A stretch of DNA of 64,000 nt from positions 217,165 through 281,164 of the forward strand of contig CALSCP010000945.1 in assembly GCA_943704425.1 (NCBI GenBank), given 5' to 3'. The DNA is from Ministeria vibrans ATCC 50519. Its lineage: Eukaryota > Protista > Filasterea. The stretch's first letter is position 1. Each line of letters opens with the position of its first letter. Below, in pieces: positions 7,598 through 62,117 of the stretch. Below the pieces are notes generated by a model. It searched no databases and was not told the DNA's origin. It saw nothing but the letters and a program-made list of their open reading frames with translations. A program made the translations under genes and the position numbers.

Positions 7598-8795
7598 ATG
7601 AGATCTATCGTGTACCTCACGTTGTGCCTCTACATGGCGTCGGCAAGCGAAATGTACGCTGTTCTCTGACATTCCTTCGCCTAAACATTTTTGTTTTTTT
7701 TCGTTTCTCGTTTTCAGTGTTTCGCTCAATGGCAATCTGCAAATGGAGGCCAAGGCGGGCGGCAGCGTCGTGGTGTTGGCTCCCACCAGGGTCCAGGGGT
7801 TGGGTGTCGCCACAGTGAGCAGTCTGGCCGCAGAGCTGGTCGATATCAACGCAAACATGGCGCGACTCGAAGCAGAAGTGGCGGACGGCTGTTGCACGGT
7901 CGCCCTCGACAGTATCAGCCTTGTGGGCGACCCCGTGGCCCTCGACATGTCCCCCTGGTCCGAAACAACGCTTGTTCGCAACGATGTGACGGTCAGCTCA
8001 AACAGTGCACTTGCGTCGCTGACGGGACTCAACAGACTGTGTACTGTCAAGCGACACATCACGATCCACTCCAACCCAGTGATGACCAGCCTGAATGGCC
8101 TCTCTCGTCTGACCATTGTCAATGGTGACCTTGACCTTGAAAATCTCGGGGCCCTCATCTCACTGCGGGATCTCGGCTCGCTGTTGACCGTCGACGGCAA
8201 CCTTCGTCTCTCACAACTCCAGCACCTCGGGTCGCTCACTGGCCTCGAATTGCTCGGCTCCGTGGGTGGCAATTTTCACCTTGAACTCCTCCCTTCTCTC
8301 ACTACCCTGGGCGCTGCGTCGTCGCTCACCACCATTGGCGGCAATCTCCAACTCAGCAGTCTCACTCAACTCAGCTCGCTCTCTCTCGACTCTCTCCAGC
8401 TCATCTCGGGCTCTCTGTCCATCACCGACGCAGATCTCGTCACCACATCATTCCCCGCTCTGCAGCGCATTGAAGGCAACGCCTTATTCAGCATTGGATC
8501 GACGGCCGAGCGTCTCTCGCTCCCTCTTCTCACCCACATTACAGGCAACCTTCAAATCTCCCTCAACACCAATCTGCACACCGTCGACGCCTTTGCTGTC
8601 GCCTCCCTCGGCGGAACCCTTCGCATCACCTTCAACGCTCTTACCAGTCTATCCTTCCTCGACTCCCTCCGCTCCTTTTCCGGCCCCCTCGACATCTGGG
8701 AACCCTCTGCCTCCATCTGCAACTCCACTCTGGTCCGTCTCACTGCTCTCGCCTCCTCTGCCTCCGTCAACGTTGGCCAGATTAACAACTGTTAA
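7598..8795 (+). CDS. Secreted Receptor-L-domain (beta-helix) repeat protein
   Basis: Signal peptide MRSIVYLTLCLYMASAS, one intron, then repeated LxxLxxLxxIxGxLxI units. No TM segment. Confidence 0.7.
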
Positions 8796-51113: not shown

Positions 51114-53681
51114 ATGAAGCTTATTATCGCGACGCTGGTCGTCGCTCTGGCTCTGTTGCACCAGGCTCATGCAGGTATGTCGTTCTTTCGCTCGCTCTCT
51201 CTTTCTCTCTCGACTTTTTTTTTTCACTCATCCTCCACCGCTTGAATGAGCGCCTGAAAGCATGCGCGGGTGATGTCAAACAAGTCATAACATGCCACAA
51301 TGTTCAATGATGCCGCAGATGCGGGCAGCGTTGACCCCACAGTCGCGCGTGGTTTGTGGGACATTCGCGGGTTTCTTTTTTTTTTTTTCTTCTCCCGTGT
51401 AGTCATTGTGGGTTTCGTCTGAAAACCCTCATGCCAAGAAATCCGTTGCACATTTCTCGCTTTATTGCTATCCAAACTACGACTTGGGTAGCTCTTGCCT
51501 CCCACAAGTCTGCGTTGTGCTTTAGGACACTTCTATTTTTCACTTTTCGCTTTGCTGGGGTTTTTGACGTTTTCTTTTTCTGTTCGTAGCCTGCGAAGGA
51601 GGAGAGTGGAAGAAAGACTCGTCCAAGTTCAAGAACTGTGTCACCCTCGCCGGTGACCTCGAAATCAATGACGAGGACATTGACACCAGCGAAGTAAGAA
51701 CTTTTCTTTTCTTTTTTTTCTTTTTTTTCTCATCTGACTCACACACATTCCCTCTTACTTGTTCTTAGTTTGACAAGATGAAGTCGCAATTGTCGTCGCT
51801 CAAGACTATTAACGGTCGTCTTTACTTGAAAAAGGCCGACGGTATCAAGTCGCTCGAGTTTCTCAACAACCTGCAGTACATTAAGGGCACGTCGTGGGGC
51901 GGCTCGGGTCTTCACATCGACGACTGTGACGACCTCGAGAACGCCAACTTGCCTAACCTCAAAGAGGTGTGGGGCGAGACAATCATCAAAAAGAACAAAA
52001 AACTGCAGCAAGTCCATTTTGCTGCTCTCGTTGCACTCGGTAGCTACGTCTTGATCGACGACAACGATAAGCTCACCGGCGTTCAGATGGCCCAGCTGTA
52101 CGCCCTCTCCGGTGGTCTCACCGTCACCAGCAACCCGCTCATGACCAGCCTGACAATGTCAACAATGAGTTCCTTCTCGGGCTACTGCATCATCGACGAC
52201 AACGACGCGCTCGTCAGCAACCAGATTTTCTTCGGTGCCAGCTACATCTACGACCAGTGCTATCCCTGCACATCGAGCACCTGCAAGAACGGCGGTACCT
52301 GTGCCACCACCCAGTCCTCGACAGCTCCTTTCTTCACCTGCGCTTGCGACACGCACTACTCGGGCACCACTTGTGCCACGGCACTCCCATGCGCCGCGGC
52401 ACCCTGCAAGAACGGCGCCACTTGTTCCAACGTGGGCTCCACCGGCTACACGTGCGCCTGCGGCGCCGGCTTCTACGGCACCAATTGCGACCTCTGGCTC
52501 ACACAGCAGTATGTCGCCGGCTCGAAAACATCCAAACTTGTCTCGGTCTCCATCGACACTGCCACCGGCATCACGTACGCCGCTGGCTTTGCCGACTCCA
52601 AGATTCCCGGCGTCACTACACACAACGATAAGACCGACTTCTTTGTGGTCGCCGTTAACGAAGCGGACGGATCCTCCGTCTACAACTCCATGTTCGGCTC
52701 GGACAAGGAAGACGAAGTGGTCACCATGCAGGTGAACCCCTCCTCATCGACGATCTACCTCGCGGGAAAGTCTAAGGGCGACTTTGGCAACAGCGACGCC
52801 AGCAAGAACAACGGCGACTTTGACACCCTGTTTATGTCGGTGAGCAAGGCGACCGGTGGTCTTAACTGGGCCAAGAGCTTTGGTGACAGCAAGGACGACA
52901 TTCCGCTCGATATGGAAATTGACTTTAGCACTGGCCATGCGTACATTGTGGGCAGCACCTTTGGCAAGTGGAGCAACCTCCCCGAGAAGAGCAAGGCTTT
53001 TGGCTACCTGGCCAAGATCAACATCGCCGACGGTTCGCTCGTCTACACCGTAGCACTGGGCCCGCTCGGCAAGACGAGCGCCGCCACCGGCATCGCTCTC
53101 GACCTGTCCAACTCGCGTGCTTTCATCTCCATGAACACCGACGATGTGCTTCCTAACTCGGGCGCCACTAACGCCGGCAAGGGCGATATTGGTCTTATTG
53201 TGGTGAACACCGCCACAGGCGCCATCACCAGCACCACTCAGTGGGGTACCGCCGTTGAGGACGAGACGGCCGCCATCGCCATCGACACCAACCTTGGCCA
53301 GGTGTACATTGTCGGCCAGACGCAGGGCGACCTCAACGGTGTGTCAGGCAGTGATGTCAAATTCTACAACGCCATGGTTATGGCTATCGACACCACGACT
53401 CTTGCCGTCACCTACACTAAGCTGTGGGGCGACAAGGGAGACGCGTTTGCCTCGGACGTTGTCGTCGACTCGACTTCTGGTCGCGTTCTCGTTACCGGCT
53501 CTACCACCGGTATCTTCTACGGAGATGCCATTGGCGGAGACGCTCGTCGTCGCCGTGCATGGGCCAAGGTCGGCACGACGACCACCACCACCACCACCAC
53601 GACAACTTCGTCAGACGATCGTCGTGATGTCACCGTCGCCGAACAAGACTCGCTCCTTTATTCCGTCCACCGTGGAACTCG

Positions 53682-53718
<37 letters not shown>

Positions 53719-56700
53719 AACCCCATCTGTGTCACCGCCACCACCACGACCACCACCACCACGACAACGTCGGGCGACGACCGTCGTGACATCAGCGAGG
53801 AAGAAGAGGCTGCCGCTGAACTCAAGACCGAGCTCGAAGAGCTTAACAACCTTGCCCACCGGATGCGCCGAAGCGGAAGCAAGAGCGGCAAGAGCAAGAG
53901 TGGCAAGACGTGCAAGAGCACCCCGTCCGTTGACGAGGCTTTCCTCGTTCAGTTCAACGGTGCCAACGGCGAGCGTGTCTACTCGCGCACCTGGAACAGT
54001 GGTTCGGGTGGCAGTGCCTACGGCTTTGGTGTTGCTGTCGATGCCAGCCGCAAGAATGTCTATCTTGCCGGACAATACTCGGGCGGTTCCACCATCGACA
54101 CCAACTTGCTCTCGTTCATCAACACCAAGGCAACCGCCTTTCTCCTTCAAGTCGACCAAGACTTTGCCACGCCCAAGTCGGACGTCAATGAGTGCGCTTC
54201 GAACCCTTGCATCAACGGCGGCACTTGTGTCAATGACCTCCTCTTCTTCACTTGCGTGTGCCCTTCGGGATACGTTGGTGGGATTTGCGAGAGCGAACAG
54301 GACGAGTGCATCAGCTCTCCGTGCAAGAACAACGGCACTTGTGTCGATGGAATCTCCGACTACTCCTGCACCTGTCTGACTGGCTACGAGGGCACTCGCT
54401 GCGAGACCGACATCAACGAGTGCGCCAGTTCGCCTTGTGCCAACGGAGCGACCTGCACCAACCTTGTGGGTTCGTTCTCCTGCTCATGTGCCACTGGCTA
54501 CACCGGTGCCCAGTGCCTCACCAACATTGACGATTGCCCCAGCACAAACGCCTGCCACAGCCACGGCACTTGTAACGATGGCATTGAATCGTACACCTGC
54601 TCATGCAACGCCGGTTTTACCGGTACCCTCTGCGAGACCAACGTCAACGATTGTCCCACAGGCACCGTTTGCAGCGGTCATGGTACCTGTAACGATGGTA
54701 TTGCCTCGTACACCTGCACCTGTGACACAGGATACACCTCGGCGCTCTGCCAGACAAACATTAACGACTGCGCGTCGAACCCGTGCAAGAACCAGGGCGC
54801 GTGCAAAGACGGCATTGCCTCGTACACCTGCACTTGCCCCGCCGGCTACACTGGCACACACTGCGAGACGAACATCAATGAGTGTGAGGGCGTCACCTGC
54901 ATGAACGGTGGCAACTGCATCGACAAGGTGAACTATTTCAAGTGTGCGTGCGTCACCGGCTTCACCGGCGTGTACTGCGAAACGAACATCGATGACTGCA
55001 CTGCGTCGTCGTGCTCCGCGTACGGCACTTGCCAGGACGGCGTTGCCTCGTTCTTTTGCGCTTGCGCTCCCGGCTACACCGGCACCTCGTGCTCCAGCAA
55101 CATTGACGATTGCGCGTCGAACCCGTGCAAGAACCAGGGCGCGTGCAACGACGGCATTACCTCGTACACCTGCACATGCCCCGCCGGCTACACTGGCACA
55201 CACTGCGAGACGAACATCAATGAGTGTGAGGGCGTCACCTGCATGAACGGTGGCAACTGTATCGACCAGGTGAACCATTTCAAGTGTGCGTGCGTCACCG
55301 GCTTCACCGGCGTGTACTGCGAAACGAACATTGATGACTGCACTGCGTCGTCGTGCTCCGCGTACGGCACTTGCCAGGACGGCGTTGCCTCGTTCTTTTG
55401 CGCTTGCGCTCCCGGCTACACTGGCACCTCGTGCTCCAGCAACATTGACGATTGCGCGTCGAACCCGTGCAAGAACCAGGGCGCGTGCAACGACGGCATT
55501 ACCTCGTACACCTGCACATGCCCCGCCGGCTACACTGGCACACACTGCGAGACTGACATTAATGAGTGTGCTTCGAATCCTTGCGAGAACGGCGGCACTT
55601 GCAATGACCATGTCGGCTCTTTCTCGTGCAACTGCGCCGGAACTGGCTTTGTTGGCTCCACATGCAACGCTCAATTCGATGAGTGTGTCTCGAGCCCGTG
55701 CCAGAACAGCGGCGTGTGCTTCTCGGGCATCAACTACTACTCTTGCAACTGCGACGGAACCGGCTACACCGGTACCATGTGCGATGTGGAGGTCGACGAA
55801 TGCGAAAGCAGCCCTTGTGCCAACGGTGGCGTCTGCTCCAACCTCATCAATGCATTCTCGTGCTCCTGTGCTGCAGGCTTTGTAGGCACACAATGTCAGA
55901 CCAACACAAACGAGTGTGCCTCGAACCCGTGTGTCTTTGGCGTGTGCACTGACCTCGTCAACGGCTTTTCTTGTGCCTGCACCGCCGGCTACGAAGGTGT
56001 CGTATGCGACGTGAACACCGACGAGTGCGGATCGTCGCCGTGCCAGAACGGCGGCGTGTGCACCGACCTTGTTAACAGCTTCTCGTGCGGATGCCCCAAC
56101 GGGTTTGCCGGCGATGTGTGCGAGACAAACATTGACGATTGCGCTGTTGCGCCTTGCAAGAACGGCGCGACCTGTGTCGATGGCATTGCACAGTACACCT
56201 GTACGTGTAGCGCCGGCTACGAGGGCACCCGTTGCCAGACAAACACAAACGAGTGTGCCTCAAACCCGTGTGTCTTTGGCGTGTGCACTGACCTCGTCAA
56301 CGGCTTTTCTTGTGCCTGCACTGCCGGCTACGAAGGTGTCGTATGCGACGTGAACACCGACGAGTGCGGATCGTCGCCGTGCCAGAACGGCGGCGTGTGC
56401 ACCGACCTTGTCAACAGCTTCTCGTGCGGATGCCCTAACGGGTTTGCCGGCGATGTGTGCGAGACGAACATTGACGATTGCGCTGTTGCGCCTTGCAAGA
56501 ACGGCGCGACCTGTGTCGATGGCATTGCACAGTACACGTGTACTTGTAGCGCCGGTTACGAGGGCACCAACTGCGAGACCAACATTGATGACTGCGCGAC
56601 GAGCCCATGCCACCAAGGCGAATGTATCGACGCGGTTCAGGACTTCACCTGTGTGTGTAGCCCGGGCTACACGAACACTCTCTGTGACGAGAACATTGAC

Positions 56701-59700
56701 GATTGTGCATCGAATCCGTGCCAGAACGACGGCACCTGTGCCGACGGTGTTGTTTCCTACACTTGCTCGTGCCCAGGCGGTTTCAAGGGCCGTCTTTGTG
56801 AGGAGAACATCGACGATTGTGCCGTCACGAAACCTTGCAATGGACAAGGCAGCTGCAACGATGGTGTTCAGTCGTCCACGTGCTCATGCGACACAGGCTA
56901 TACCGGTACCGAATGCGAGACGAACATTGACGACTGCGCCGGAGTCACTTGCCAACACGAGGGCACCTGCGTCGACTCCATTGCCGCTTTCGCATGCACT
57001 TGCGCCGGTGGCTACACCGGCACTGTGTGCGAGACCGAGATCGACGAATGCGCCTCTTCTCCCTGTCAGAACGGCGGAGTGTGCACCGACTTTGTCAACT
57101 ACTACACGTGCGCTTGCGAATATGGCTTTGTTGGCAGCAACTGCGAACTTGTTGGCTTTATTCTCTCCCCGGCAGGCGGTGTCTTCACCATTGGCTCGAT
57201 CACGGCTGAGTTTCCCGAAGATGCCGTTTCGCAGACCGTCACTGTTTTGGTGGAGCTCGCCGCCGACCTGACGGTGCTCCCGACCGGCCCGAGCGGCTCC
57301 ACCTCGCTTTTGACCAGCGCTGTCTCGTTCCGTACTCTCGAACTCCGTACCGCCGACTTCCTCTTGCCCTACTCGGTTGTTCTCACGCTGTCCACCGCCA
57401 CCAGCAAGGATGTTGTTCCCCAGATGTACTACACCAACCCAGATGGTCTCTCGACAAGCTGGACTCTCGCTGACGATTTGCCCGCGCGTCGACGTGCCCT
57501 CTCGTGCAGCGCCGGTCAAGGTTGCGGCACCGTCTCTGGCACTAACATTGCCTTTGGTGTTTTTGTTGTTGACGAGTGCGCTTCGTCGCCCTGCCAAAAT
57601 GGCGGCACCTGTGTTGACCTTGTTGACCAGTTCACTTGCACATGCCCTATTGAGTTTCTCGGTACTCTTTGCGAGACTCCGAACCCGTGCGAACCGTCGC
57701 CGTGCCAGAGCTTTTCTGAGTGCACTATCATTGGCGGTGGTACCGACTTTTTCTGCGACTGCATTGGAGCCGGTCTCACCTGTTTCGACAAGGTGTGCGG
57801 CAACTGTACTATTGACGCGGGAGCCGCTCAAAACGGCGGCGGCGCCTCGGGCACCAGCAGTGGCTCAACGAGCTACGCGGCCGCCGGTGCCGCCGGTGTT
57901 CTTTTGCTTTTGGCGCTCGCGCTGCTTGCTAAACGTCGCCGTCTGCGCAAGACTGCGCTCGGTGATAGCGAGCTGGAGACTGTCGAGAGTGTTCCCATCA
58001 TGATCAACCCTGGCTACAAGATGACCAAGGCTGACTCGCTCGTGCTCGGCATGGCTCCCGGCGACCAAATGGAGGACACTGACTCACTCCTCGACTACGC
58101 CGCTCCCATCGACTTTGCCCAGCGTGCCCCGCGTGTCGCTGAGTATCAGGCTCTGGATAACAAGAACAACTCGGCCGGCGAGTACGGATCCCTGAAGTAT
58201 GTTGTGCTCAGCCGCGATGGTGCTTACCGCGTTAAAGGCCGCGGCGACCCCGTCGATCTGTCGCTCAAGGTCGACGAATCGACTGGTGCCTACACCGATT
58301 TTGAGGGCAACCTTGTGTATTCTGGACCGGGCAAGCTCAAGCTTGGTAAGGACGGAATTTACCGCAGCGAGGCTGGCGAGGCTGTGTACGGCAACCGCTC
58401 GCTCACGCGTGGCAGTGATGGTGTGTACCGAAACGCGGAGGGTGACGCCGTGTACGGCAATGGACTCACGCTCGGCCGTGACGGTGTCTGGTACTCGGAC
58501 GACGGTCAACCCATCTATGGAAACCGCGCAGCACACGAGCGTGTGCTGCGCTGCCCCGGCAACGTGATTGAGGGTGACGATCGCATGACAGTCTACGGTA
58601 ATGGAAACGGACGAAACCGTCCCGCTCGTGACAAGGACGGTTTTGCCGTGTACGGCAACGGTCAGGCACGCCGCGGACGCGATGGTGCCAACAACGCCGA
58701 CGAAGATGCCATGTACGGCAATGGCCAGGCACGCCGCGGACGCGATGGTGCCAACAACGACAACGAAGATGCCATGTACGGCAATGGCCAGGCTCGCCGC
58801 GGACGCCGCAGTGACAACGGTGACGACATGGACGGTGATGACGTGTACGGCAACCGCAACCGCGACGATGGTGCCGACTATGGTGAGTTTGCCAACCGCA
58901 AGCGTGGACCCCGCGTCGACGCCTACGGCAACCCTGTTGAGGACAATGACGATGTGTACGGCAATCGCAACCGCGGCGACGATGGTGCTGAGTATGGCGA
59001 GTTTGCCAATCGCCAGCGTGGACCGCGACGTGTCGATGCCTACGGCAACCCTGTCGAGGAAGATGATGGCATGTACGGCAATCGCCAGCGCACGGACGGA
59101 CAACAGTACGACGAGGAAGCCTACGGCGAGTTTGCCAACCGCAAGCGTGGACCACGCGTTGATGCCTATGGCAACCCGGTCGAGGACGATGACATGGACG
59201 GAGTGTATGGCAACCGCGAACGTGACGATGGTGGCGCCGAGTACGGCGAGTTCGCCAACCGACGTCTGCCACCTCGTCGTGGCCCCGGCGGCACAGCTGC
59301 CGACGATGAGGATATGGATGCCTGGTACGGCAACCGTGACCGTGGTCAGCAGCAGGACGGCGCTGAATACGGCGAGTTTGCCAACCGATCGATGCCCCCG
59401 CGTGGCTCGCGCCGTCCCGGTGGCGACGACAGCGAGGATGCTTTCTACGGCAACCGCGCTGGCAATGACCAAGATGCCTACTACGGTGCTCTTCAGGGTG
59501 GCGATGCTATGTATGGCAACCGCGCTGGCGGCGAACAGGACGCGTACTATGGTGCGCTGCAGGGTGGCGATGCTATGTATGGCAACCGCGCTGGCGGCGA
59601 ACAGGACGCGTACTATGGTGCGCTGCAAGGTGGCGCAGTCTATGGCAACCGTGCCTTTGGCAATGGTGAAGATGAGTATGCCGCCTCGAACGTGCGCACA

Positions 59701-61184
59701 CGCGGTCACGACGGTGTGTACCGCAGCCGCTCGGTGCTTCCCGACGAGCAGGGCGTGTTCGACGACGAAGAGGCTGTCTATGGCAACCGCGTCGACGAGG
59801 GTGCTGTCTATGGCAACCGCGCCGTTGACGAGGGCGCCGTCTACGGCAACAACGTTGGCGGTGAGGATGCCACGTACGGCAACCGCAACAACTTTGGCGA
59901 CGACGAAGAGGAGTACGCGGCGACTGCCGTGAAGATTGGCCGCCAGGAAGAGCGTCTGGTGCCCAAGGGCATTCAGCTGTCGGCACCTCAGGCATCCTCG
60001 AGCATTGCCCGTCAATACGACGTTGTGACCTCAGAGCCCGGTGATGACTACCGCAAGTACGCTGAGGCTGCCGCTCGTGGTGATGCCGACGAGGTCATCT
60101 ACTCGCGCGTGTTTGTGGCTAAGAAGAGCAAGGCGAAGGGCGACCGTGCCGACTCGCGCAACGTCTTTTCGCTGACGGGCGCCACCGAAGGCGAGTCGGT
60201 GGCGAACAACATGCAGCTGAGCCGCACTCAGTCGTGTTTCCGTTCGGCCAATGCTGCGGCCACGTCGGACTTTGTGCCTGAAATTGCCGATCTGGCCGGA
60301 AACTTTTACCCGCGCGAGTGGCTCACCAAGGTGTGCGAGCTTGGCGACGGCGAGTTCGGTCAGGTGGTGCAGGCGAGCACTGACGACGGTGGTTCGCGCC
60401 CCGAGAAGTACATGGTCGCTGTCAACTTTTTGGACGAGCAGGCGACTCCACGCGAGCGCAGCGCGTTCATCCGCGAGGCTCGTCTTATGGCCATGTTCTC
60501 TCACCCGAATGTGTTGAACCTCGTTGGTGTGTGCACTCCGGATCAGCCTTGGCTGCTCCTCACCGAGTTCTGCCAGTACGGCGACTTGCGCAACTTCCTG
60601 CGTCGCTGTGCCACGACCGAGTCGCTCAAGGTTACGTACGCCGACCAACTGGGCATCGCCGCGCAGATTGCCGAGGCTATGCAGTACCTGTCAACCAAGT
60701 TGTTTGTGCATCGCGACGTGTCGGCGCGCAACTGCTACGTGTGTGAAGGTGGCGTCGTCAAGCTTGGTGGCTTCGGTCTAGCTCGTCAGCTCATGGGCGA
60801 GGAGGACTTTTACTCGGTGCAGTCGCGTGGTCGCCTGCCTGTGCGCTGGATGGCGCTCGAGTCATTGACGCACCAGCGCTTCACCGTCAAGTCGGATGTG
60901 TGGTCGTACGGTGTGCTTCTTTGGGAGATTGCGACGTTTGGTACGGCGCGTCCTTTCAAGGAGCTCAAGCCGCCGCGCATGATTGAGGCACTGCTCGAAG
61001 GGCGCCGTCTGGCACGACCCCGCGGGTGCCCGGTGCAGCTGCACAAGCTCATGTTGGAGTGCTGGAACCGCGACCCGACCATGCGGCCGACCTTTGTCGA
61101 GTTGTCCGAGGAACTCGCGGAGATGGCATCGCGTGCCGAGAAGGCCTGCGGTCACACCGCCGACCTGGGTCTGTCCCTGGACCA
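51114..61184 (+). CDS. Giant receptor tyrosine (pseudo)kinase: signal peptide, Receptor-L, 2 EGF, beta-propeller, 26 EGF, ZU5-like, 2 EGF, TM, Tyr-repeat region, TK domain; 3' end in the gap
   Basis: Exons 51114-51174, 51590-51693 and 51769 onward. Signal peptide MKLIIATLVVALALLHQAHA; L-domain start NCVTLAGDLEI; TM AAAGAAGVLLLLALALLA-KRRR; kinase motifs HRDVSARNC, LPVRWMALE and SDVWSYGVLLWEI. Confidence 0.93.
54766..55553 (+). repeat. Intragenic tandem duplication, 342-bp unit (3 EGFs), ~2.3 copies
   Basis: Near-identical DNA starts at 54766, 55108 and 55450. Confidence 0.9.
55900..56570 (+). repeat. Intragenic tandem duplication, 339-bp unit (3 EGFs), 2 copies
   Basis: Near-identical DNA starts at 55900 and 56239. 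Confidence 0.9.
58380..59890 (+). repeat. Coding repeats of YGN / YGEFANR / YYGAL tyrosine motifs
   Basis: Manual count gives ~23 YGN, 5 YGEF and 3 YYGAL. Confidence 0.9.
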
Positions 61185-62117
61185 NNNNNNNNNNNNNNNN
61201 NNNNNNNNNNNNNNNNNNNNNNNNNNNNNNNNNNNNNNNNNNNNNNNNNNNNNNNNNNNNNNNNNNNNNNNNNNNNNNNNNNNNNNNNNNNNNNNNNNNN
61301 NNNNNNNNNNNNNNNNNNNNNNNNNNNNNNNNNNNNNNNNNNNNNNNNNNNNNNNNNNNNNNNNNNNNNNNNNNNNNNNNNNNNNNNNNNNNNNNNNNNN
61401 NNNNNNNNNNNNNNNNNNNNNNNNNNNNNNNNNNNNNNNNNNNNNNNNNNNNNNNNNNNNNNNNNNNNNNNNNNNNNNNNNNNNNNNNNNNNNNNNNNNN
61501 NNNNNNNNNNNNNNNNNNNNNNNNNNNNNNNNNNNNNNNNNNNNNNNNNNNNNNNNNNNNNNNNNNNNNNNNNNNNNNNNNNNNNNNNNNNNNNNNNNNN
61601 NNNNNNNNNNNNNNNNNNNNNNNNNNNNNNNNNNNNNNNNNNNNNNNNNNNNNNNNNNNNNNNNNNNNNNNNNNNNNNNNNNNNNNNNNNNNNNNNNNNN
61701 NNNNNNNNNNNNNNNNNNNNNNNNNNNNNNNNNNNNNNNNNNNNNNNNNNNNNNNNNNNNNNNNNNNNNNNNNNNNNNNNNNNNNNNNNNNNNNNNNNNN
61801 NNNNNNNNNNNNNNNNNNNNNNNNNNNNNNNNNNNNNNNNNNNNNNNNNNNNNNNNNNNNNNNNNNNNNNNNNNNNNNNNNNNNNNNNNNNNNNNNNNNN
61901 NNNNNNNNNNNNNNNNNNNNNNNNNNNNNNNNNNNNNNNNNNNNNNNNNNNNNNNNNNNNNNNNNNNNNNNNNNNNNNNNNNNNNNNNNNNNNNNNNNNN
62001 NNNNNNNNNNNNNNNNNNNNNNNNNNNNNNNNNNNNNNNNNNNNNNNNNNNNNNNNNNNNNNNNNNNNNNNNNNNNNNNNNNNNNNNNNNNNNNNNNNNN
62101 NNNNNNNNNNNNNNNNN
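61185..62117. other. Scaffold gap (~930 N)
   Basis: Run of n. Confidence 1.

Follow-up and report, generated by a model that had tools for sequence, protein, structure and literature searches.

The question raised by this locus is what a very large receptor may do when its tyrosine-kinase domain has lost residues needed for catalysis, while the segment between membrane and kinase repeats one tyrosine motif many times over. The gene lies at positions 51114–61184 (+ strand) of a 64,000-nucleotide stretch of the Ministeria vibrans ATCC 50519 genome (GenBank assembly GCA_943704425.1, contig CALSCP010000945.1, positions 217,165 to 281,164; the whole stretch is referred to as the window), and encodes a protein of ~3,200 residues with one transmembrane pass (residue numbers count from the start of the open reading frame at 51778). 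A first-pass annotation of this DNA had proposed a giant Notch-like/EGFR-like receptor with a dead tyrosine kinase and Grb2-type docking sites, phosphorylated in trans in the manner of HER3 and LAT. Since two catalytic residues are gone and 24 Tyr-x-Asn (YxN) motifs are present, the protein is most likely a docking platform that would be phosphorylated by other kinases. More specifically, we consider it moderately probable that the gene encodes an intact, lineage-specific, single-pass receptor with a pseudokinase, whose tyrosine array is phosphorylated in trans and serves as an SH2-docking scaffold.

The overall plan is that of a receptor tyrosine kinase, i.e., a signal peptide, one transmembrane helix, and a cytoplasmic tyrosine-kinase fold, and the kinase domain carries the HRDVSARN catalytic loop and the PVRWMALES P+1 loop that identify tyrosine kinases (aligned to RET and EGFR). 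In the HMMER alignment to the solved RET and EGFR kinases, an Asn lies under the β3 Lys and the first Gly of GFG lies under the DFG Asp, so that the VAIK Lys and DFG Asp of a catalytically competent kinase are replaced by those of VAVN and GFG. These two motifs, as well as HRD, were located exactly where the first-pass annotation had placed them. Since the ATP-anchoring β3 Lys and the Mg-binding DFG Asp are both gone, loss of catalysis is predicted; by the usual sequence definition the domain is a pseudokinase, with the fold kept and phosphotransfer predicted to be lost, in line with the dead tyrosine kinase that had been proposed.

The family labels attached to this receptor fared less well. 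The best single-domain match of the kinase is RET (236 bits), compared to 160.6 bits for each EGFR domain, and EGFR came first in the match table because its chain holds two domain copies. Since RET, MuSK, ABL, and MET are about equally close, the kinase is not specifically EGFR-like, and EGFR is no nearer to it than RET, MuSK, or ABL are. Together with a single PF01030 match and no furin-like Cys-rich domain, this kinase affinity (nearest RET) speaks against the EGFR-like designation. The Notch-like designation does not hold either, as no matches to the LNR module, RAM region, or ankyrin repeats of the Notch family were found; the intracellular part has a kinase fold, and the EGF array is present.

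Since both residues were read from a fragmented assembly (29.7 Mb in 2860 contigs with gaps), the odd codons might be assembly or sequencing errors, or the gene might be a decaying pseudogene. The frame is nevertheless open over 9.4 kb, and relatives carry comparable changes. Of the ~30 kinase loci in the genome, only three depart from VA[VI]K and DFG, with ~25 other loci retaining both residues; among the three is a paralog on C1494 (L034) that reads VAVE and GFG and shares the plan of the gene, running from an L domain and ~27 EGFs through the same ZU5-like module and a transmembrane helix to a YxN array and a kinase. Kinase relatives were sought by exhaustive HMMER over 1.84 billion representative proteins, and two environmental fragments, i.e., P0022 (from a JGI sample; VIVN and GFE) and P0049 (from a groundwater metagenome; VFVK and GFG), both carry YGN repeats upstream of the kinase. 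In a maximum-likelihood tree of 87 kinase domains (with the C1494 paralog entered as two kinase-exon rows), the gene clusters with protist and environmental kinases. It pairs with the C1494 paralog with a Shimodaira–Hasegawa-like approximate likelihood-ratio (SH-aLRT) support of 100, this pair is sister to P0022 plus P0049 (100), and the clade of these four sequences (five rows) is supported at 96.

With VAVE and GFG in the C1494 paralog, GFE or GFG in the environmental relatives, and a supported clade that unites these three sequences with the gene, assembly errors are an unlikely source of the two substitutions. The same change of Asp to Gly occurs in the paralog and in the two sequences from independent environmental samples, the Lys-to-Asn change recurs in one of the latter, and the β3 Lys is lost in three of the four clade members. 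Moreover, the terminal branch of the gene measures 0.18 against a median of 0.48; with a branch that is not accelerated, the domain is not decaying, and the glycine-rich loop (G-loop), the αC Glu, HRDxxARN, and PVRWMALES are all retained, so that the kinase fold remains constrained. Error or pseudogenization therefore seems scarcely credible to us, and this comparative evidence (paralog, relatives, clade, and short branch) argues that absence of the DFG Asp in this small clade has been inherited and selected.

That clade has so far been seen only in the M. vibrans genome and the two environmental fragments. The protein itself was absent from a 5.8-billion-protein collection, in which a search over the full-length range returned kinase-level relatives only and a further search recovered P0049 alone. 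Likewise, a scan of JGI metagenome contigs with a 39-base pattern across the GFG codon revealed no independent assembly. Outside the clade, the genome encodes another probable pseudokinase (L014, G000:C2371:48177-51962), which reads VLIAQSA without a β3 Lys and HGD for HRD, with DFG kept.

A further possibility is that the kinase domain retains a non-canonical activity, as with the GFG of CASK or the displaced Lys of WNK, and that the receptor phosphorylates its own array. Indeed, the GxGxxG of the G-loop, the αC Glu, the HRD Asp, and the catalytic-loop Asn (in HRDVSARN) are intact, and the activation loop retains a Tyr. However, Lys and Asp are both gone with no substitute Lys in β2 or near β3, the C1494 paralog has a Glu at the Lys position, and the G-loops of P0022 and P0049 are degenerate, so that we regard such self-phosphorylation as very unlikely.

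With the kinase predicted to be inactive, attention falls on the juxtamembrane region, which spans residues 2052–2845 and, at 794 residues, is considerably longer than the ~500 residues given before. The previously reported counts of 23 YGN, 5 YGEF, and 3 YYGAL motifs proved exact. Acidic residues lie upstream of the motif, in keeping with the acidic context noted before, and V, I, M, or L usually precedes the Tyr directly. The YxN motif is six-fold enriched, with 24 copies observed versus 3.8 ± 1.8 in composition-preserving shuffles, none out of 2000 of which reached 24. The same holds for its relatives, as the C1494 paralog has 20 copies where 2.7 are expected, and P0022 has 8 where 0.5 are expected. 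In the C1494 paralog, moreover, the Tyr and the Asn are kept, with G, A, S, V, Q, W, R, or E at the +1 position between them. Such a pattern is to be expected if a tyrosine kinase writes a short linear motif that is then recognized through its Asn at +2. Closer to the kinase, the EPGDDY motif is kept in the paralogs, in P0022 (as EPADDY), and in P0049, while P0063, a relative, is without it.

The array is not peculiar to receptors with a dead kinase. Active receptor kinases of this genome, including L017 (C1042), L003 (C86), L020 (C2362), and L022/L035 (C1674), have hydrophobic-YxN arrays ahead of their kinase, the C1042 receptor having 12 YxN copies. They also show a GDDYxx[YF] motif, a looser GDDY version of EPGDDY, at a distance of ~100 residues from the kinase on its N-terminal side. 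Since these active kinases share it, the YxN motif appears to be a lineage-wide trait of receptor juxtamembrane regions, and the gene may be viewed as an extreme, catalytically dead case of a shared juxtamembrane design. The C1674 relative has the same succession of EGFs, ZU5-like module (with RRRAL), EGFs, transmembrane helix, and juxtamembrane module, followed by an active-type kinase (VAVK and DFG). As a separate observation, this C1674 receptor (L035) is 99.8% identical to P0087 from a public metagenome assembly (ENA ERZ23497376, SAMN09406036), and L007 is likewise ~99.8–100% identical to P0145, so that the organism or a very close strain must occur in an environmental sample.

Both writers and readers of phosphotyrosine are encoded in the genome. 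A Src-family kinase on C1507 was confirmed by PDB search, and the peptide commonly used as a Src substrate, AEEEIYGEFEAKKKK, has YGEF at its core (PMC4936181). On the reading side, ~26 SH2 matches were found, among which Csk-, Crk-, Nck-, and SHP-like proteins were picked out by eye from the translations, and SH3-SH2 adaptors are present (C2106, which is Nck-like, and C209). An SH3-SH2 adaptor query against the 5.8-billion-protein collection gave no match. This holozoan-type toolkit agrees with the earlier suggestion that the DNA came from a probable unicellular holozoan.

These components suggest how the receptor could work. Ligand- or contact-driven clustering through the large ectodomain would bring the array to an active kinase, candidates being the C1674 sister receptor, other receptor kinases of the genome, and the C1507 Src-family kinase, and these would phosphorylate the array in trans. 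The resulting 20-plus phosphotyrosines could then recruit SH2-domain proteins at high valency, so that the receptor would act as its own docking protein, in the role that Gab, IRS, LAT, or p130Cas play in animals. Of the HER3/LAT-like multivalent receptor that had been put forward, the pseudokinase receptor and the real, conserved array thus stand, with phosphorylation in trans as the best reading; the Grb2 part is speculation, and so is the formation of condensates, which is purely inferential.

Several points weigh against this docking-platform reading. First, loss of the Asp alone is no proof of inactivity, since CASK, which likewise has GFG for DFG, is an active Mg-independent Ser/Thr kinase; CASK does keep its β3 Lys. 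Second, the motif count is partly the product of recent duplication, since ~8–9 YxN copies, about a third, reside in young tandem DNA repeats (63 nt × 2.6, 66 nt × 3.0, and 117 nt × 3.6). Third, the tyrosines of the first 5–6 YGN copies may be structural, since these copies sit in a conserved, possibly folded ~21-residue β-hairpin repeat. Finally, the EF-loop Trp to which Grb2 owes its pYxN specificity was seen in none of the ~26 SH2 matches, a survey that is incomplete because introns or gaps interrupt a number of these domains. The pY-X-N-X sequence is the ligand of the Grb2 SH2 domain (PMC3787023), and the YxN enrichment and the Asn kept in the paralog would suit a Grb2-type reader, which is a tentative candidate only.

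The third point is at the heart of a broader alternative, in which the YGN repeats are no phosphosites at all and instead form either a degenerate MORN- or YD-like β-hairpin array or a Tyr/Arg-rich low-complexity region that clusters the receptor by self-association. The membrane-proximal units do keep a ~21-residue period with Gly, Asp, and aromatic positions conserved in three paralogs, and the 63-nt repeats (YGNGQARRGRDG...) hold the same ~21-residue period. The juxtamembrane module is 61% identical to that of the C1494 paralog and 33% identical to that of the C1674 relative, and its AlphaFold2 model shows short β-hairpins at a predicted local distance difference test score (pLDDT) of 70–82 over ~50 residues. 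Low-complexity self-association is consistent with the 54 Tyr and 80 Arg among the 794 juxtamembrane residues. The mean pLDDT of the module is only 48, however, and no Pfam repeat family matched the juxtamembrane region at E up to 1. Past residue 2350 the motifs are irregularly spaced (10–46 residues) by spacers rich in Gly, Asp, Asn, and Arg, and residues 2279–2712 fall well on the disordered side by charge and hydropathy. Moreover, the C1494 paralog keeps Y-x-N alone amid unrelated spacers, and the active receptor kinases of the genome bear the motif without the repeat frame. We therefore judge a purely structural or self-associating role unlikely, if still deserving some weight. A structural repeat that degenerated, with the hydrophobic-Tyr-Gly-Asn part alone retained, seems to be the source from which the array expanded.

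The docking-platform reading finds its nearest precedent among choanoflagellates. Receptor kinases have radiated separately in each lineage of unicellular holozoans, and their ectodomains are not shared with animals (PMC4342544); an unfamiliar architecture is therefore to be expected here. In the RTKB family of Monosiga brevicollis, three out of nine members are predicted pseudokinases without catalytic residues, and RTKB2 has six disordered RM2 repeats that bind an SH2 domain once the receptor or Src has phosphorylated them (PMC3584944). The likeness lies in a lineage-specific holozoan receptor tyrosine kinase with EGF repeats in the ectodomain and repeated, disordered, acidic tyrosine modules in the cytoplasm. 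Nevertheless, the RM2 units are ~80 residues long and C-terminal to an active kinase, whereas the short YxN motifs are N-terminal to a dead one; the valency is far higher here (24 motifs) and the ectodomain is different. The resemblance to RM2 is functional only. The earlier remark that this architecture was not recognized in any animal receptor tyrosine kinase family should be read with this in mind, as a pseudokinase receptor with phosphotyrosine repeats has a precedent in Monosiga RTKB (PMC3584944).

The comparison with HER3 (ErbB3) rests on impaired kinase activity, on phosphorylation in trans through an active relative, and on service as a multi-site docking platform; here, the active relative on C1674 has the same juxtamembrane architecture. 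HER3, however, retains the β3 Lys and the DFG motif and binds ATP, carries ~6 YxxM docking sites in a C-terminal tail, and has the L1-CR1-L2-CR2 ectodomain of ErbB receptors, which this protein lacks. EphB6, EphA10, PTK7, RYK, and ROR are likewise receptors with a tyrosine-kinase fold that are without catalytic residues and signal as scaffolds or co-receptors, and in EphB6, which undergoes phosphorylation in trans, neither the Lys nor the DFG Asp is present. They differ in their unrelated ectodomains, in having no multivalent YxN array, and in having lost catalysis independently.

The array itself resembles LAT, the p130Cas substrate domain (with 15 YxxP motifs), Gab/DOS, and IRS, in which a disordered region holds many copies of one SH2-binding Tyr motif that Src-type or receptor kinases phosphorylate. 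Animals have these as proteins in their own right, whereas the array described here forms part of the receptor itself. A bona fide Gab/DOS protein was not found in Monosiga (PMC2747914), in agreement with the idea that receptors of these organisms carry their own docking sites.

A far-reaching version of this idea would hold that the dead-kinase receptor clade of these unicellular animal relatives acts as a membrane-anchored, LAT-like hub, in which more than 20 phospho-YxN motifs per chain, written in trans by Src or sister receptors, meet a multivalent SH2/SH3 adaptor and form condensates, and that the pYxN-SH2 reader and receptor-embedded arrays are older than separate docking proteins. We consider this combined proposal rather improbable. 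If true, the hydrophobic-YxN code common to the active receptors would imply that the pYxN-SH2 reader and the embedded arrays preceded docking proteins of the separate, animal kind.

The expansion of phosphotyrosine signalling predates the origin of animals, and to our knowledge only one receptor kinase of a unicellular organism (i.e., Monosiga RTKB2) has been studied biochemically. The gene, its C1494 paralog, and the active C1674 sister constitute a natural set of dead and active receptors in one small genome, and a docking motif that is simple, highly repeated, and conserved makes the age of HER3-type trans-phosphorylated scaffolding testable. It can likewise be asked whether docking functions arose as parts of receptors, ahead of any Gab-, IRS-, or LAT-type protein, and which SH2 domain first read pYxN. 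A pseudokinase receptor with an embedded multivalent tyrosine array is in this respect an extreme, clean, and experimentally usable example rather than a new principle, as the design is known from choanoflagellates and human HER3.

The positions of all features are listed in Table 1.

Table 1. Features of the receptor gene, with positions in the window and the observations on which each assignment is based.
Feature	Position	Strand	Basis or remark
Exon 1	51114..51174	+	Start codon, 20-residue signal peptide, donor GTATGT at 51175; three-frame translation and DNA sequence
Exon 2	51590..51693	+	First 34 residues of mature protein, Receptor-L start; acceptor TAG 51587-51589, donor GTAAGA 51694
Exon 3	51769..61184	+	3138 codons without stop, runs to assembly gap
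Receptor-L domain, single, extended	51778..52257	+	Pfam PF01030, E 6.8e-12
EGF repeats 1-2	52267..52488	+	Pfam and six-cysteine pattern
SBBP-like β-propeller, seven blades	52489..54153	+	Iterated blade hidden Markov model; Atlas neighbours; own-genome paralog
Low-complexity insert, 125 residues, within blade 6	53524..53898	+	Two poly-Thr runs, SG repeat, RRRR/RR basic clusters
26 tandem EGF repeats	54193..57144	+	Pfam EGF, E 6.7e-139; pattern count
ZU5-fold β-sandwich, membrane-proximal	57154..57570	+	AlphaFold2 and Foldseek
RRR loop, candidate convertase cleavage site	57487..57495	+	Ahead of last two ZU5-like strands
EGF repeats 29-30	57577..57783	+	Pfam and six-cysteine pattern
Transmembrane helix (aa 2034-2051), then KRRRLRK	57877..57930	+	Positive residues on inner side
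Conserved juxtamembrane module, ~21-residue units (G.DG.YR...G..VYGN)	58081..58611	+	Maybe partly folded
Tyrosine array: 23 YGN (24 YxN), 5 YGEF, 3 YYGAL	58387..59883	+	Irregular spacing, 10-46 residues
EPGDDY motif	60034..60051	+	~100 residues ahead of kinase
Tyrosine-kinase-fold domain, predicted pseudokinase	60328..61116	+	Pfam PF07714, E 2.8e-82; best solved match RET, E 4e-69
VAVN (β3 Lys to Asn, codon AAC)	60415..60426	+	HMMER alignment
HRD	60709..60717	+	Motif position
GFG (DFG Asp to Gly, codon GGC)	60769..60777	+	HMMER alignment
Assembly gap	61185..62117		933 N; conceals ~8-10 last residues and stop codon

The gene consists of three exons with canonical GT/AG borders, in which the reading phase of exon 2 connects exon 1 (phase 1) with exon 3 (phase 0), and the frame remains uninterrupted for ~9.4 kb (51778–61184). 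The exons were searched separately. The start at 51114 proved correct, as the signal-peptide exon is encoded there. The end at 61184, in contrast, is where an assembly gap of 933 N begins rather than a stop codon, and homologs terminate ~10 residues past the position aligned to the gap edge. With regard to such ends, the C-termini of the C1494 paralog (L034), P0022, and P0034 read S-x-V or S-x-I (SGV, SAV, and SLI), resembling a class I PDZ ligand, while that of P0032 is SAA.

From the N-terminus, the protein comprises the signal peptide, one Receptor-L domain, two EGFs, a seven-blade SBBP-like propeller, 26 EGFs, a ZU5-fold module, two EGFs, the transmembrane helix, the juxtamembrane region, and the kinase. 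Pfam gave one Receptor-L domain where several had been claimed, while the estimate of ~30 EGFs was borne out by 30 six-cysteine patterns counted across the protein, and the calcium-binding type of EGF pattern (DxD/NEC) occurs nine times in the whole protein. Elsewhere in the window, a second open frame with a Receptor-L match (PF01030, E 3e-10) is located at 7743–8792 (+).

The propeller region (~555 residues) matched neither Pfam PF06739 (SBBP) on its own sequence nor any PDB entry in a sequence search. A hidden Markov model seeded on one blade and iterated nevertheless resolved seven units, with domain E-values of 1e-9 to 1e-26; in addition, the SBBP propeller repeat is present in the language-model (Atlas) neighbours of the region, and a distant own-genome paralog of the propeller scores 34 bits against the PF06739 cut-off of 20.5. 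The β-propeller of the first-pass annotation is thereby supported. The halves of blade 6 lie at residues 555–582 and 708–732. The possibility that the insert between them is an unspliced intron was ruled out, its DNA being GC-rich and coding-like. The same propeller family also appears to be used in L074 (G000:C352:8055-11372), which combines an SBBP-like propeller, EGFs, and a GPS motif (PF01825, E 4e-12) in one open frame and resembles the ectodomain of adhesion G-protein-coupled receptors (GPCRs).

The membrane-proximal module (139 residues) gave no Pfam ZU5 match at E up to 1. Its AlphaFold2 model, from a four-sequence alignment, had a pLDDT of 78 and a predicted template-modelling score (pTM) of 0.73, and in Foldseek its top 16 matches were ankyrin and UNC5 ZU5 domains (probability 1.0), with template-modelling (TM) scores of 0.51–0.68 (0.62–0.68 for the top ten and 0.51 for UNC5b). 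Next in rank were GAIN domains of adhesion GPCRs. The ZU5-like domain that had been suspected is therefore supported by predicted structure. It shares the β-sandwich fold with the ZU5 domains of ankyrin, UNC5, and PIDD and, like GAIN, adjoins the membrane after adhesive repeats. Animal ZU5 domains are cytoplasmic, however, whereas this one is extracellular and has a conserved RRR loop instead of the HFS or GPS autoproteolysis motif, its last strand reading IAFGVF.

The RRRAL sequence of this loop is invariant in the ZU5-like modules of three paralogs, i.e., this gene and those on C1494 and C1674 (L034:8521-8940 (-) and L038:1480-1908). In the relative P0063, SHFS (with the ZU5 autoproteolysis motif HFS) occupies the last strand of the module, and the genome contains two P-domain convertase genes (L082 and L083). 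The RRR loop, the two convertase genes, and the HFS motif in P0063 together hint at membrane-proximal processing of the ectodomain, comparable to the S1 cleavage of Notch or to GAIN cleavage; in our hypothesis, a convertase probably cuts the ZU5-like module at the conserved loop, which would yield a two-chain ectodomain.

Finally, a group of ~2900-residue ENA proteins (P0001–P0007 and P0016) scored ~1000–1200 bits against a single kinase query, with 10 separate matched stretches in P0016, and these proteins appear to carry many tandem tyrosine-kinase domains.

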